In this document: positions 51,755 through 59,811 of the stretch, piece after piece
Position numbering within the stretch: position 1 is the first letter of the stretch
How the letters are laid out: each line of letters starts with the position of its first letter
DNA from: Pseudomonas aeruginosa PAO1
Lineage (GTDB): Bacteria > Pseudomonadota > Gammaproteobacteria > Pseudomonadales > Pseudomonadaceae
Length of the DNA stretch: 64,000 nt
NCBI RefSeq assembly: GCF_000006765.1
Contig: NC_002516.2
Reading direction: 5' to 3' (one strand)
Position numbers and translations under genes: made by a program
The notes under the pieces: generated by a model
What the model was told of the DNA's origin: nothing
The model's database searches: none
The model's input: the letters and a program-made list of their open reading frames with translations, nothing else

Positions 51755-52066
51755 TCAGGCCCCCGTCGCTTTGCCCAGCACACGCTCCAGGGCGAACAGG
51801 ATGGCCTCGCTGGCCTCGCGTTCGCCGCGTTCGATCATCGCCATGTAGGAAGGACTGATACCGACCTCCCGGGCCACCTGTTCCAGGCTCAGGCCGCGCG
51901 CCTCGCGGCGCTCCAGCAGACTCGCGGAAGGCGGCGCCGGCGCGGTCGTCTCCACCGCGACACTGGCGGCCGGGCGACCGGCGGCGGCCAGCAACGCCTG
52001 GTATTCGGCCCAGGGCAACACCGCGTATTCCGCCTCGCCGTCTCGCGTGATCACTTGGACATTCAT
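51755..52066 (-). CDS. XRE HTH protein with Phd/YefM-like N-terminus
   Basis: AAGGAG RBS; VITRDGEAEYAVLPWAEY; RGLSLEQVAREVGISPSYMAMIERG. Confidence 0.85.
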   Translation of the reverse strand: MNVQVITRDGEAEYAVLPWAEYQALLAAAGRPAASVAVETTAPAPPSASLLERREARGLSLEQVAREVGISPSYMAMIERGEREASEAILFALERVLGKATGA

Positions 52067-52169
52067 GTCGGTCTCCTTGCAAGCCGCCATCTTATCAGGC
52101 ACCGCGCCGCTGCGGACTGGCTATACTGCTGCCCTGGTCACACAGTCTGCCTGGTGGAGGAGCCCACGG

Positions 52170-52916
52170 GTGCGCCGGAGAAGTCTTGGTTTGTGCATCC
52201 TGCTGGGAGTCGGACAGGCCTTCGCCAGCGAGCTGCGCTGGGGCTTCAGCCCCGCCGACGGCATGCCCTATGTGGACATCGTCGATCACCAGCTGCAAGG
52301 CGGCTTCACCCGCCAGTTGGGGGAGCGGGTCGCGCAGCGGCTGGGATTGTCGCTGCGTTTCGTGGAAACGCCGAACCGAAGGATCGACGGCTTCATGGCC
52401 AGCGGACATATTCACGTGATCTGCAACTCCAACCCCGAATGGGATAGCAAACCCGAACGCTACCATTGGTCTCCTGCCCTCTTCGAAGAGCAGGACGTCC
52501 TCCTGCAGCGCGACGACCGTCCGGCGATCCGCGACTTCGCCGAGCTGCGCGGCAAGACCCTGGGTACAAGTCTAGGCTATGTCTACGCGGACGATCTCAT
52601 GCAGGCCTTCGCTGCCGGGGAAATTCGCCGCGAAGATACCCGCGACCTGGCCAGTCGCGTGCAGATGCTCAAGCGTTCGCGCCTGGACGCCGCGGTGGAC
52701 ATGCGCCGCCCGCTGCTCTACCTGACGCGCCAGCATCCCGAGCTGGGCCTGAGCGTCAGTCCGCTGGTACTGCAGAGCTATCGGATGCACTGCATCTATG
52801 GCGGACAACTGCCGGTCCCCGTCGAAAGTATGGACCGGGTGCTCGACGAGATGGTCAGGGACGGCAGCATCGGGCGCCTGCTGGAAAACAGCCTGCAAGC
52901 GCCTCAGGAACCCTGA
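52170..52916 (+). CDS. Stand-alone family-3-type substrate-binding protein
   Basis: GGAGG RBS before GTG 52170; signal peptide; LRGKTLGTSLGYVY. Confidence 0.8.
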   Translation: MRRRSLGLCILLGVGQAFASELRWGFSPADGMPYVDIVDHQLQGGFTRQLGERVAQRLGLSLRFVETPNRRIDGFMASGHIHVICNSNPEWDSKPERYHWSPALFEEQDVLLQRDDRPAIRDFAELRGKTLGTSLGYVYADDLMQAFAAGEIRREDTRDLASRVQMLKRSRLDAAVDMRRPLLYLTRQHPELGLSVSPLVLQSYRMHCIYGGQLPVPVESMDRVLDEMVRDGSIGRLLENSLQAPQEP

Positions 52917-53335
52917 ACGCGCTCCGCCCTGGGAGCCGGCAGCTCTCGCAGCGCCTGTTGCGTCTCGACGCCCTGGGCGTCGCGCCAGACCTTGAAGGCA
53001 TCCAGCTCGGCCTGCCAGCGACGCACTACCCAGGCCAGGACGGCGAGATCGTCGAGCAGGCCGACACCGAAGATGAAGTCGGGAACGATATCCACCGGCG
53101 AAAGGAAATAGGCCAGCGCCGCGATCACCGAGAGCAACGCCTGGCGGCTGAGTCCGCGGTATTCGCCGCGAACCCAGGCCACCAGCAGTTCCTGCAGCAG
53201 GCGCAGGTCGCTCTTCACCAGCTTCAGGCGCGAGCGCTTGCGTGCTACCGCAATCAACAAGGCGGGCACCCGGCCACGGGCCAGGAAACGTTCCGCGATC
53301 CCCAGGTAACGACTGAATCCTCGTGGTGCATCCAT
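52904..53335 (-). CDS. YkvA/DUF1232 membrane protein
   Basis: YFLSPVDIVPDFIFGVGLLDD signature. Confidence 0.9.
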   Translation of the reverse strand: MDAPRGFSRYLGIAERFLARGRVPALLIAVARKRSRLKLVKSDLRLLQELLVAWVRGEYRGLSRQALLSVIAALAYFLSPVDIVPDFIFGVGLLDDLAVLAWVVRRWQAELDAFKVWRDAQGVETQQALRELPAPRAERVQGS

Positions 53336-53377: not shown

Positions 53378-53580
53378 TTATCCACGCATACTGTGGATAA
53401 CCTTGTGAACAGCCCCCCCTTCCGTCGGCGAGAAGCCCGTCGCTACAGGCTTTCCGACAGATCGGACACTTTTTAGACAATGCTCTAAAAGCATTGAAAA
53501 TCAAGGGTTTGACCTAGCGCAACGGACAACCCGAGGTCAATACCGTAGGTCGGGTCGACGTGCGACAAATGTGTGCATAA
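53378..53580. promoter_or_regulatory. DnaA-box cluster with Fis and IHF consensus sites (DARS/datA-like)
   Basis: TTATCCACG 53378-86, TGTGGATAA 53392-400, TGTGAACAG 53404-12, Fis-type GGACACTTTTTAGAC 53464-78, IHF AATCAAGGGTTTG 53499-511, TGTGCATAA 53572-80. Confidence 0.7.
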
Positions 53581-53654: not shown

Positions 53655-53687
53655 TGAAAACGCCCCGTCATGGACGGGGCGTTTCAT
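53655..53687 (-). terminator. Intrinsic terminator of the FKBP gene
   Basis: AAACGCCCCGTC/GACGGGGCGTTT stem; TTTTCAT on the minus strand. Confidence 0.8.
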
Positions 53688-53704
53688 GCATCGCGGCGGA
53701 AAAA

Positions 53705-54466
53705 TTACTTCTTCGCGTCCGCCTTGGCTTCGGGCTGCGCTGCGGCACCGGCCTCGGGCTCCGCGTCCGGCTTGGACGGATCCTTGATGCCGAGCAGTTC
53801 CATGTCGAAGACCAGTACCGAGTTGGCCGGGATCGCCGGGCTCGGGCTCTGCGCGCCGTAGGCCAGCTCGCTGGGGATGTACAGCTTGATCTTCTCGCCG
53901 ACGTGCATCAGTTGCAGGGCTTCGACCCAACCCGGGATCACGCCGCTGACCGGCAGGTCGATCGGGCTGCCGCGCTCGATGGAGCTGTCGAAGACGGTGC
54001 CATCGGTCAGGCGGCCTTCGTAGTGGACGGTCACCACGTCGGTGGCCTTCGGTTGCGGGCCATCGGCCTTCTTCACGATTTCGTACTGGAGGCCGGAAGC
54101 GGTGGTGGTCACGCCGTCGCGCTTGCCGTTTTCCTCGAGGAATTTCTTGCCGGCCTTGGCGTTTTCGTCGCCGATGGCGGCCATCCGCTCCTCGGCACGT
54201 TTCTGCAGGAAGGCGAAGGCTTCGGTCAGCTCTTCATCGGTGAGCTGCTGCTTCTTCTTGCCGAGGGCGTCTTCGATGCCCTTGGCGACGGCTTTCGAAT
54301 CCAGGTCGTCCATGCCTTCCTGGGACAGGCTCTTGCCCATGTTCAGGCCGATACCATAGGAAGCTTTCTGCGCCGGGGTCTTCAACTCAACGTTGGTCTG
54401 CGAATCGCAGCCGGAGAGAACCAGACCGACCAGTGCGATCGCTGCTGCCAACCGATGTTGTTTCAT
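53705..54466 (-). CDS. fklB: FKBP-type PPIase lipoprotein (FkpA/Mip-like)
   Basis: Lipobox LSGC; ASYGIG, TASGLQY, VHYEGRL.DGTVFDSS, VIPGWVE. Confidence 0.88.
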   Translation of the reverse strand: MKQHRLAAAIALVGLVLSGCDSQTNVELKTPAQKASYGIGLNMGKSLSQEGMDDLDSKAVAKGIEDALGKKKQQLTDEELTEAFAFLQKRAEERMAAIGDENAKAGKKFLEENGKRDGVTTTASGLQYEIVKKADGPQPKATDVVTVHYEGRLTDGTVFDSSIERGSPIDLPVSGVIPGWVEALQLMHVGEKIKLYIPSELAYGAQSPSPAIPANSVLVFDMELLGIKDPSKPDAEPEAGAAAQPEAKADAKK

Positions 54467-54722: not shown

Positions 54723-54799
54723 TGGCGCAGCGGACGGGACTCGAACCCGCGACCCCCGGCGTGACAGGCCGGTATTCTAACCGACTGAACTACCGCTGC
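54723..54799 (-). tRNA. tRNA-Asp(GTC)
   Basis: GCAGCGGTAGTTCAGTCGGTTAGAATACCGGCCTGTCACGCCGG...GTTCGAG...CCA, 77 nt. Confidence 0.98.
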
Positions 54800-54815
54800 G
54801 CGTAACTTGCGAGAT

Positions 54816-54891
54816 TGGTGGGTGATGACGGGATCGAACCGCCGACCCTCTGCTTGTAAGGCAGATGCTCTCCCAGCTGAGCTAATCACCC
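54816..54891 (-). tRNA. tRNA-Val(TAC)
   Basis: GGGTGATTAGCTCAGCTGGGAGAGCATCTGCCTTACAAGCAGAGG...CCA, 76 nt. Confidence 0.98.
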
Positions 54892-54941: not shown

Positions 54942-55055
54942 GCCCCTCGATGAAAAAAATTTTCTGCCGTTCCAAGGAGTTAGCGACGGACCGGGGTTGG
55001 CCTGAGCCGCCAGCGGCGGAATAATGGGTCCTTTGTGCCCGGAGAGAACGACCCC

Positions 55056-55976
55056 ATGTGGTTCCGCAATCTGCTCGTCTACCGCCTCACCCAGGATCTG
55101 CAACTGGATGCCGATTCCCTCGAGAAAGCCCTCGGCGAAAAATCCGCCCGCCCCTGCGCCAGCCAGGAGCTGACCACCTACGGCTTCACCGCGCCGTTCG
55201 GCAAAGGCCCGGACGCACCGCTGGTACACGTCAGCCAGGACTTCTTCCTGATCTCGGCACGCAAGGAAGAGCGCATCCTGCCGGGCAGCGTCGTGCGTGA
55301 CGCACTGAAGGAAAAGGTCGACGAGATCGAAGCCCAGCAGATGCGCAAGGTCTACAAGAAGGAACGCGACCAGTTGAAGGACGAGATCGTCCAGACCCTG
55401 CTGCCGCGCGCCTTCATCCGCCGCTCCAGCACCTTCGCCGCGATCGCGCCGAGCCTCGGCCTGATCCTGGTCGACTCGGCCAGCGCGAAGAAGGCCGAAG
55501 ACCTGCTCTCGACGCTGCGCGAAGCGCTCGGCTCCCTGCCGGTACGCCCGCTGAGCGTGAAGGTCGCGCCGACCGCGACCCTCACCGACTGGGTCAAGAC
55601 CCAGGAAGCCGCCGGCGACTTCCACGTGCTCGACGAATGCGAGCTGCGCGACACCCACGAGGACGGCGGCGTGGTCCGTTGCAAGCGCCAGGACCTGACC
55701 AGCGAGGAAATCCAGCTGCATCTCACCGCCGGCAAGCTGGTCACCCAGTTGTCCCTGGCCTGGTCGGACAAGCTGTCCTTCGTCCTCGACGACAAGCTGG
55801 CGGTCAAGCGCCTGCGCTTCGAAGACCTGCTGCAGGAGCAGGCGGAAAAGGACGGCGGCGAAGACGCCCTCGGCCAGCTCGATGCCAGCTTCACCCTGAT
55901 GATGCTGACCTTCGCCGAATTCCTTCCGGCGCTCTTCGAGGCCCTCGGCGGCGAAGAAATCCCCCAGGGCGTCTGA
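55056..55976 (+). CDS. rdgC: Recombination-associated protein RdgC
   Basis: [11 protein letters not shown]; KILP-type ERILPGSVV; LLPRAF; 306 aa. Confidence 0.96.
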
Positions 55977-56998: not shown

Positions 56999-57058
56999 AC
57001 TGGGTCCCGGTCGGGAAGCCTTGTCCCGACCGATGAACCATGCAAAATACCGCACGCA

Positions 57059-57112
57059 GTGAGGACGACCTCACCACCCGCCTCCGGCCGGTGATCGAAT
57101 GGGGACGGCCCC
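57059..57112 (+). ncRNA. Guanidine-II (mini-ykkC) riboswitch
   Basis: Two hairpins with ACGR loops: GTGAGG-ACGA-CCTCAC and GGGG-ACGG-CCCC, upstream of an SMR gene. Confidence 0.9.
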
Positions 57113-57137
57113 GCCACCCGTTGCCCTGGAGATCGCC

Positions 57138-57936: not shown

Positions 57937-59811
57937 TCAGCGAGCTTCGCCGCGCAAGCTCGTCACCCGCGCCTGCAGGTCGAGGCGCTCCACCGCCCCC
58001 GGCGCCACCGATTCGCCGGCCACCAGGCTTACCCGCGACCACAGGCGGCGGAAGAAGCCCTTGTTCGGGTCGCGGCTGAAGAAGCTGCCCCACAGGCCCT
58101 GCAGCGCCATGGGGATCACCGGAACCGGGGTTTCCTCGATGATCCGCTCGATCCCGGCGCGGAACTCATTCATCTCGCCGTCGGCGGTCAGCTTGCCCTC
58201 AGGGAAGATGCACACCAGCTCCCCGTCCCTCAGGTAGTCGGCGATGCGCTGGAAGGCTCGTTCGTAGATCCCTTCGTCCTCGTGGCGCGCCGCTATGGGC
58301 ACCGCGCCGGCGGTGCGGAAGACGAAGTTGAGCACCGGCAGTGAGAAGATCCTGTAGTACATGACGAAGCGCACCGGCCGCCGGATCGAGCCGGCGATCA
58401 GCAGCGCGTCCACGTACGAGACGTGGTTGCACACCAGCACCGCCGCTCCCTCGTCCGGGATCGCCTCCAGGTTCACATGCCGGACCCGGTACATGGTGTG
58501 GCTGAGCAGCCAGACCAGGAAGCGCATGGTGAATTCCGGGACGATCTTGAAGATGTACACGTTCACCGCGACGTTCATCAGCGACAGGGCGAGGAACAGC
58601 TGCGGGATCGACAGCTTGGCGACGCTGAGGAAGAGGATCGAGACCAGCGCAGCGGCGACCATGAACAGGGCGTTGAGGATGTTGTTGGCGGCGATCACCC
58701 GGGCCCGCTTGTCCTCGTCGGTGCGTGCCTGGATCAGGGCGTACAGCGGTACGATATAGAAGCCGCCGAAAATGCCGATGAACAGGATGTCGGCCAGCAC
58801 CGCCCAGGTCTCATGGTGGCGCAGCACCGCCAGCCAGTCGTAGGGCGCCTCGCCTGGGGGAATGCCGCCGGCGTGCCACCAGAGGAGGATGCCGAAGACG
58901 GTCAGGCCGATCGAGCCGAACGGCACCAGGCCGATCTCCACCTTGCGACCGGAAAGCTTCTCGCACAGCATCGAGCCCAGCGCGATGCCCACCGAGAACA
59001 CGGTGAGGATCAGGGTTACCACGCTTTCGTCGCCGTGCAGCCATTCCTTGGCGAAGGTCGGGATCTGCGTCAGGTAGACCGCGCCGAGGAACCAGAACCA
59101 GGAGTTGCCCACCAGCGAGCGCGAGACCGCCGGGCGCTGGCCGAGCCCCAGGCGGAGGATGCTCCAGGACTGGGCGAAGATGTTCCAGTCGAGCTTCAAC
59201 CCCGGCAGCGCCGCCGCCGCTCGCGGAATGCCGCGGCTGGCCAGGTAGCCGCAGGCGGCCACCAGCACCACCGCGGTGGCCACCGCCGCCGCGTAATGCG
59301 CATGGGACATCAGCACGCCGGCGCCGATGGTGCCGGCCAGGATCGCCAGGAAGGTGCCCATCTCCACCAGCGCGTTGCCGCCGACCAGTTCGTCCTCGTG
59401 CAGGTGCTGGGGCAGGATCGAATACTTCACCGGGCCAAATAGCGCCGAGTGAGTGCCCATGGCGAACAGCGCGACGAACATCAGCGGCAGGCTGCCGAAG
59501 ACGAAGCCGGCAGCGCCGACCAGCATGATGCCTACCTCGGCCAGCTTCAGCGCGCGCATCAGCGCGTCCTTGTTGTACTTCTCGCCGAACTGTCCGCCCA
59601 GTGCCGAGAACAGGAAGAACGGCAGGATGAACAGCAGTGCGCAGAGGTTGACCAGCAGGCTGCGGTCGCCGCTGACGCTGAGGTGATAGAGGATGGCGAG
59701 GATCAGCGACTGCTTGAAGATGTTGTCGTTGAAGGCGCCGAGCAGCTGGGTGATGAAGAACGGCAGGAAACGCCGCTTGCCCAGCAGGGCGAATTGCGAA
59801 TGTTGGGTCAT
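57937..59811 (-). CDS. LplT-like MFS fused to a lysophospholipid acyltransferase
   Basis: LGAFNDNIFK, FGPVKYSILP; C-terminal NHVSYVD and FPEG. Confidence 0.9.
   Translation of the reverse strand: MTQHSQFALLGKRRFLPFFITQLLGAFNDNIFKQSLILAILYHLSVSGDRSLLVNLCALLFILPFFLFSALGGQFGEKYNKDALMRALKLAEVGIMLVGAAGFVFGSLPLMFVALFAMGTHSALFGPVKYSILPQHLHEDELVGGNALVEMGTFLAILAGTIGAGVLMSHAHYAAAVATAVVLVAACGYLASRGIPRAAAALPGLKLDWNIFAQSWSILRLGLGQRPAVSRSLVGNSWFWFLGAVYLTQIPTFAKEWLHGDESVVTLILTVFSVGIALGSMLCEKLSGRKVEIGLVPFGSIGLTVFGILLWWHAGGIPPGEAPYDWLAVLRHHETWAVLADILFIGIFGGFYIVPLYALIQARTDEDKRARVIAANNILNALFMVAAALVSILFLSVAKLSIPQLFLALSLMNVAVNVYIFKIVPEFTMRFLVWLLSHTMYRVRHVNLEAIPDEGAAVLVCNHVSYVDALLIAGSIRRPVRFVMYYRIFSLPVLNFVFRTAGAVPIAARHEDEGIYERAFQRIADYLRDGELVCIFPEGKLTADGEMNEFRAGIERIIEETPVPVIPMALQGLWGSFFSRDPNKGFFRRLWSRVSLVAGESVAPGAVERLDLQARVTSLRGEAR

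Follow-up and report, generated by a model that had tools for sequence, protein, structure and literature searches.

To our knowledge, nearly everything that has been established about how chromosomal DNA controls the ATP/ADP cycle of DnaA, through the elements DARS1, DARS2 and datA, comes from E. coli. In the sequence of E. coli MG1655, from which both DARS elements were taken for comparison, the core of DARS1 reads TTATCCACT-attcc-TGTGGATAA-cca-TGTGTATTA and that of DARS2 reads TTATTCACC-ttttc-TGTGGATAG-agt-TGTGAAGAA; in the DARS core, boxes I and II are opposed across a 5-bp gap, and box III is co-oriented with box II after a gap of 3 bp. A DARS is expected, moreover, to drive ADP off ADP-DnaA in vitro, to do so regardless of the flanking genes, to raise the initiation mass when deleted and to bring about over-initiation in extra copies. 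ADP leaves the DnaA protomers that occupy boxes I and II (Sugiyama 2019, PMC6868365). DARS1 is independent of IHF and Fis (PMC11724364). DARS2, which IHF and Fis activate, has an arm on the box III side where sites for both proteins are joined by another DnaA box approximately 160-185 bp away (PMC4245941); in the literature searched, its published homologues come from Vibrio, Shewanella and Aeromonas only (Kasho 2014). Later accounts (Kasho et al. 2023, PMC10380432; Sugiyama 2019, PMC6868365) credit Fujimitsu 2009 with predicting DARS-like sequences, their box spacing conserved, in many species of proteobacteria. Since these accounts already state a wide proteobacterial occurrence, a DARS-like core outside enterics is not new in itself.

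A candidate for an element of this type lies in the window, that is, the whole stretch of 64 kb of Pseudomonas aeruginosa DNA that was analysed, where a gap of 369 bp between ykvA (PA3261) and fklB/fkbA (PA3262) is the site of all the motifs considered here (Table 1). An earlier note, made from the sequence of the window, had proposed a DARS2/datA-like element in this gap, composed of a DnaA-box triplet, a Fis-like site, an IHF site and a distal DnaA box; all of these motifs are present where it had placed them, and the gene coordinates agree with the ykvA-fklB gap as their setting. The 143-aa product of the reading frame assigned to ykvA has 99% identity to a P. aeruginosa 'YkvA family protein'.

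Table 1. The module, its parts and the features that bound it. Positions are those of the window; (.) marks features given without a strand, and offsets are counted from the start of box III.
Feature	Position (strand)	Description	Remarks
Whole module	53378..53580 (.)	203 bp, non-coding	triplet core + Fis-like site + IHF site + distal DnaA box
DnaA box I TTATCCACG	53378..53386 (+)	head-to-head with box II, 5-bp gap 'catac'	1 mismatch
DnaA box II TGTGGATAA	53392..53400 (-)	- strand reading is a perfect TTATCCACA	followed by N3 'cct'
DnaA box III TGTGAACAG	53404..53412 (-)	- strand reading CTGTTCACA, 2 mismatches	co-oriented with box II, 3-bp gap
Block CGATCTGT (- strand reading)	53457..53464 (-)	conserved	abuts the Fis-like 15-mer
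Fis-like 15-mer GGACACTTTTTAGAC	53464..53478 (.)		offset -66..-52
IHF consensus AATCAAGGGTTTG (pattern WATCAANNNNTTR)	53499..53511 (+)	exact match	offset -99..-87
Distal DnaA box TGTGCATAA	53572..53580 (-)	co-oriented with boxes II and III; - strand reading is a perfect TTATGCACA	offset -168..-160
ykvA (DUF1232, PF06803; PA3261)	52904..53335 (-)		ATG 42 bp from box I
fklB/fkbA (PA3262)	53705..54466 (-)	periplasmic FKBP-type isomerase (PMC8113782)	upstream neighbour, outside the element
fklB terminator hairpin	53661..53690 (-)		outer limit of the gap

Several other features of the window surround this gap. Between fklB and rdgC, tRNA-Asp(GTC) and tRNA-Val(TAC) are found (54723-54891 on the minus strand and 55035-55976 on the plus strand), a match to the Guanidine-II (mini-ykkC) riboswitch stands at 57057-57113 (+) with 34 bits (gathering score 32), and the Rfam family Bcj11 (Burkholderia RNA 11) is matched in Pseudomonas at 59038-59162 (-) with 62 bits (gathering score 49). 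On the other side, ykvA is followed in other Pseudomonas (loci L083-L086) by an XRE-type HTH gene and a small gene; the counterpart region in P. aeruginosa is 51755-52102 (-), and a convergent ORF of 289 aa (52047-52916, +) lies between ykvA and the HTH gene in this species.

The Pseudomonas triplet has the geometry of the DARS core. Comparison with DARS1 and DARS2, which the earlier note had recommended, gives identical orientations and the same 5/3 spacing, and the DARS1 core that it had given, TTATCCACT-N5-TGTGGATAA-N3-TGTGTATTA, matches the MG1655 sequence. In DARS1, DARS2 and the Pseudomonas module alike, it is the last base of box I that deviates from the consensus, and box III is degenerate. 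The module shares with DARS1 a perfect box II, imperfect boxes I and III and a location upstream of a gene, and differs from it in genomic address, DARS1 being located in the bioD-uvrB gap. With DARS2 it shares the arm on the box III side, where the IHF site matches the consensus exactly in P. aeruginosa and points the same way, with respect to the core, as the DARS2 IHF-like site. However, the order and spacing of DARS2 (core, IBS1-2, FBS2-3, box V) are not those of the Pseudomonas module: in DARS2, the core is followed by IHF-like sites at -87 and -71, by a match to the Fis consensus at -125 and by an oppositely oriented box V at -185, whereas in Pseudomonas it is followed by Fis at -66, IHF at -99 and a distal box at -168 that is co-oriented with boxes II and III. 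The mutH context of DARS2 (the ygdT/rppH-mutH gap) is likewise absent, as the Pseudomonas flanks are ykvA and fklB. Because the order of Fis and IHF is swapped, what is known about the activation of DARS2 may not transfer to this module. The DARS2/datA-like character that had been attributed to it stands as regards the DARS core geometry and the IHF and Fis-like sites on the box III side, but not as regards the order, which is swapped with respect to DARS2, or the arrangement around IHF, which is mirrored with respect to datA. In MG1655 itself, a third DARS-like triplet, TTATCCCAG-ctttc-TGTGGATAA-cat-GGTGTAAGA, is located inside ygdT (1455-1489 of locus L002), approximately 300 bp from the DARS2 core and close to the third 'DARS2' DnaA ChIP-seq peak, at 2969501 (Stringer et al. 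2024, PMC11317965).

Among the three boxes of the core, it is box I that sets the DARS elements apart. DARS1, DARS2 and the Pseudomonas module have a head-to-head box at this position with one mismatch each, and no opposed box is found at polA, purH, nrdA, datA, oriC R4 or mioC of E. coli, which have 4-7 mismatches there. What discriminates is thus the opposed box I, which the non-DARS E. coli sites that were checked do not have. On the other hand, nearly all DnaA-bound sites in E. coli consist of two boxes in the same orientation with 2-3 bp between them (Stringer et al. 2024, PMC11317965) and, therefore, the pair formed by boxes III and II is generic. The DnaA regulon operators of E. coli (nrdA, polA, purH, mioC and dnaA) resemble the module in having a co-oriented double box beside a gene start (PMC11317965), but those that were checked, at polA, purH, nrdA and mioC, have neither an opposed third box nor a fixed arm with IHF, Fis and distal-box sites.

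Only two perfect TTATNCACA boxes occur in the 64 kb of the window, both of them inside the module, and three of the ten DnaA-box sites with at most one mismatch sit within its 203 bp. The IHF consensus is matched once, 0.17 matches being expected. The Fis consensus is matched 121 times against 158 expected; it carries no information alone and becomes meaningful only because it stands at one fixed offset in relatives. A relaxed pattern of the triplet has a single match in the window and likewise one match each in 76 of the 80 related loci, and no second copy of the triplet was found with this pattern on either strand in 508 kb of related loci.

Alignment of the YkvA protein led to 80 ykvA loci in GTDB species genomes, belonging to Pseudomonas, Stutzerimonas, Phytopseudomonas, Metapseudomonas and Azotobacter, from which the anatomy, the conservation and the geometry of the module can be read directly. 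The triplet is kept in 78 of them, with invariant gaps of 3 and 5 bases and variable bases within these gaps; among 81 unique sequences, the major-allele frequency is 0.59 in the N5 spacer and 0.70 in the N3 spacer. In the same set of sequences, box II reaches a mean of 1.00, being perfect in 77 of the 78 triplet-bearing loci, and box I 0.95, with eight of its nine positions at least 96% conserved and its last base as the only variable position (major allele 0.62). Box III is weak, with 2-4 mismatches and a major-allele frequency of 0.85, and its terminal ACA is invariant. The IHF 13-mer has no or one mismatch in 77 of 82 loci, the specified positions being conserved and the N4 positions free, and its distance to box III is 85-86 bp in 79 of 81 loci. 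The distal box is perfect in 79 of 82 loci, where variation (G/T/A) is confined to the N position of the consensus, and is separated from the IHF site by 58-61 bp in 78 of 81 loci. The spacer between these two sites has no sequence conservation (major-allele frequency 0.43); thus, its length but not its sequence is selected, which points to a folded nucleoprotein complex. At -66, the Fis consensus is exact in 40 of 81 Pseudomonadaceae sequences and has at most one mismatch in 68. Conservation of the boxes and of their spacing across Pseudomonas, a check that had been proposed together with the element, was found in near-exact form, and both are under strong selection. Two further stretches of the arm recur: the block CGATCTGT is near-invariant in Pseudomonadaceae, other taxa reading CCAA or CAAT at the same bases, and a GC-rich inverted repeat, GCCC...GGGC, followed by TTTG, lies at 53433-53452 and is found at the same offset (-45 to -15) in loci L003-L086.

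Within Pseudomonadaceae, the element is always located directly upstream of ykvA in the triplet-bearing loci. The core is 41-44 bp from the ykvA ATG in most loci and 28-86 bp overall; P. syringae-type loci, which were reached via FklB homologues, also carry the triplet, with a core-ATG distance of 76 bp. Gene fklB adjoins in only 60 of the 80 loci, and the element is still present in 20 Stutzerimonas-type loci that have no fklB neighbour. The element thus travels with ykvA, and fklB was rejected as its anchor. In P. luteola and P. asuensis, ykvA is intact, the gap is short and the element is absent at the locus; it would therefore be dispensable in this group or have moved elsewhere. A record titled 'Enterobacterales bacterium' (L015) has a locus like that of the P. 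nitroreducens group, with the same element and an fklB 85% identical, and is probably a mislabelled or contaminated bin.

The same layout is found beyond Pseudomonas. Metagenome contigs were scanned with a pattern of the core only, CACA-N3-TTATCCACA-N6-GTGGATAA, from which the flanks were left out; at least 120 stretches matched, and 80 loci were examined among the matches listed. Among the matches listed, the loci span 33-73% GC, two are linked to ykvA, about five are DARS1 of the E. coli type, and the rest lie beside unrelated genes. Recurrent neighbourhoods are hemW upstream with citrate synthase (gltA) or an M48 peptidase downstream (at least 12 loci), xseA with exbB (at least 9), priA (at least 7) and uvrB/bioD (at least 6); the closest named relatives of one of the hemW genes are uncultured Gammaproteobacteria/Woeseiaceae. 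Relative to the nearest genes, as judged from crude ORF calls, the element has no constant polarity, and the layout is independent of any one neighbouring gene.

For the comparison of offsets, all loci were anchored on the start of box III. Among the matches listed, a co-oriented DnaA box is found at -165 to -199 in 53 of 71 metagenomic loci, an IHF consensus with at most one mismatch at -97 to -100 in 32 of 71, and a Fis consensus at -66 that is exact in 17 of 70 and has at most one mismatch in 34 of 70, against a background of about 0.25 matches per offset elsewhere for this consensus. Some of the Fis sites at -66 are near-perfect palindromes of the Fis type, such as GGTCAATTTTTGACC. The offsets in P. 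aeruginosa (Fis at -66, IHF at -99, distal box at -168) coincide with these family-wide offsets. In L152, a metagenomic relative linked to uvrB, the IHF consensus at -99 is perfect and the Fis-like site at -66 has one mismatch; DARS1 of E. coli has merely degenerate sequence at the family positions, TAACCAGTTAAAA at -99 and TTATCCCCA at -197. Among the matches listed (L094-L173), the distal box falls into classes near -166, -178, -190 and -197, approximately 11 bp or about one helical turn apart, and IHF stays at -98/-99.

A DARS-type function has to be weighed against other roles that the same sites could play. A datA-like sink, which would lower the initiation potential by assembly of ATP-DnaA and ATP hydrolysis or by plain titration, seems improbable. 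Minimal datA does have the same kinds of parts, namely a double DnaA box and one IHF site, with another box approximately 150 bp away (PMC11724364), the function of datA is IHF-dependent, and the perfect boxes of the module would titrate DnaA in any case. Nevertheless, the double box and the single box of datA stand on opposite sides of the IHF site with respect to the Pseudomonas module, and their distances to it are 49 and 92 bp in datA compared with 86 and 60 bp in the module. Moreover, datA, which acts on DnaA in the opposite sense, is without a head-to-head box (4 mismatches), whereas box I of the module is conserved at 8/9 positions. The datA-like reading was thus rejected on its arrangement. 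Hardly any credence can be given to a remnant or secondary origin, or to a chance cluster of sites, taken jointly, as nothing speaks for them except that DnaA boxes are there. The origin-like reading was discarded since there are only four boxes and no AT-rich tract, the GC content never falling below 46% over 100 bp, which leaves no AT-rich unwinding region; chance is refuted by a clustering and a conservation that far exceed it.

The gap could also be a promoter region and nothing else, in which DnaA, IHF and Fis would couple the transcription of ykvA to replication and growth with no effect on the nucleotide bound to DnaA. This seems unlikely, although just 42 bp separate box I from the ATG of ykvA, with the double box at 42-69 bp, all 78 triplet-bearing loci have the element linked to ykvA, including those in which fklB is not adjacent, and boxes III and II resemble the double boxes, 2-3 bp apart, of the E. 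coli DnaA regulon (PMC11317965). A similar alternative in the earlier note, that of a DnaA operator for ykvA only, has against it the same layout of approximately 205 bp at other addresses and the presence of ykvA without the element in the P. luteola group. Indeed, the four sites recur with the same spacing beside unrelated genes in other taxa and in no constant polarity to them, the checked non-DARS sites of E. coli are all without a head-to-head box, the core-ATG distance is looser than the internal spacing, and P. luteola and P. asuensis have the gene but not the element. In addition, a consensus scan of the gap gave no sigma-70-like promoter on the ykvA strand, and hexamers picked by eye there are unconvincing. 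A second role as ykvA operator, next to the proposed one in nucleotide exchange, is likely. It is very improbable that the conserved entity is transcribed, either as a leader RNA whose GC-rich hairpin would form between the Fis-like site and the core or as a short antisense transcript from the plus strand. A weak promoter-like TAGACA-16-GAAAAT at 53474-53501 (+), overlapping the IHF site, a small hairpin at 53453-53466 and the recurrence of the inverted repeat GCCC...GGGC 15-45 bp before the core would suit such an RNA, as would the more stable folding of the ykvA-sense strand than of the antisense strand in 60 of 74 sequences, an asymmetry that base composition could cause. However, the conserved positions are exactly those of the protein-site consensuses, the remainder being free. 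A small RNA or riboswitch in the gap was rejected, as no Rfam family matches there at gathering thresholds; a conserved RNA hairpin before the core was rejected as well, for single-sequence folds are suggestive but RNAalifold gives no consensus structure and the folding z-score against shuffles is only -0.8.

Judging from its architecture alone, the module is somewhat more probably a DARS-type DnaA nucleotide-exchange element than anything else. From this architecture we infer all of the binding events and the nucleotide exchange described below. DnaA on the perfect box II would recruit further DnaA to the head-to-head box I and the head-to-tail box III, and the opposed pair on boxes I and II would release ADP from ADP-DnaA so that ATP could rebind, as in DARS1 and DARS2 of E. 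coli. IHF, bound 86 bp from box III, would bend the DNA and bring DnaA on the distal box back towards the core, with the distal box approximately 71 bp from the bend centre on one arm and box III approximately 97 bp from it on the other. Fis, on the core arm and 51 bp from box III, would tie this activity to the growth phase. The occupied core would probably affect the transcription of ykvA too, because of the short distance between box I and the ATG of this gene, and DARS1 also sits in a promoter region, that of uvrB; ykvA is, thus, probably also gated by the element. Against a DARS-type element speaks the Fis site, as no more than about half of the sequences from Pseudomonadaceae match its consensus exactly, and the fixed place upstream of ykvA in this family is what a purely transcriptional role would predict.

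In the literature searched, no link of DARS to Pseudomonas, ykvA, fklB or PA3261 was found. The statement of the earlier note that no description was known to it holds for the ykvA address, for which no paper was found, but not for DARS-like sequences as such, since a review reports these in many proteobacteria (PMC10380432). As far as the literature searched goes, the novel aspects would be the fixed four-site architecture with a putative Fis site between IHF and the core, the spread of this candidate element over different genomic addresses and its address at ykvA in Pseudomonadaceae.

The module allows a direct test of DARS-type reactivation outside enterics, as it consists of a fragment of 203 bp with six mutable sites in genetically tractable hosts (P. 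putida KT2440 and P. aeruginosa PAO1). Moreover, spacing that is fixed across free sequence sets geometric limits for a looped complex of DnaA, IHF and Fis, and the swapped order of IHF and Fis represents a natural experiment on this complex. The module also flags a class of conserved intergenic elements that current genome annotation ignores. The widespread layout may be described as a co-oriented DnaA box, approximately 60-90 bp in steps of approximately 11 bp, IHF, 20 bp, Fis, 51 bp and the III/II/I triplet. It is possible, though somewhat less likely than not, that this module of approximately 205 bp, with the P. aeruginosa element as a typical member, is a general, perhaps ancestral form of DARS in Gammaproteobacteria, located at varied addresses; DARS1 of E. 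coli would then have arisen from it by decay and DARS2 by rearrangement. If this general form is real, the recycling of DnaA-ADP by chromosomal DNA, timed by IHF and Fis, would be general in Gammaproteobacteria and not an enterobacterial speciality.
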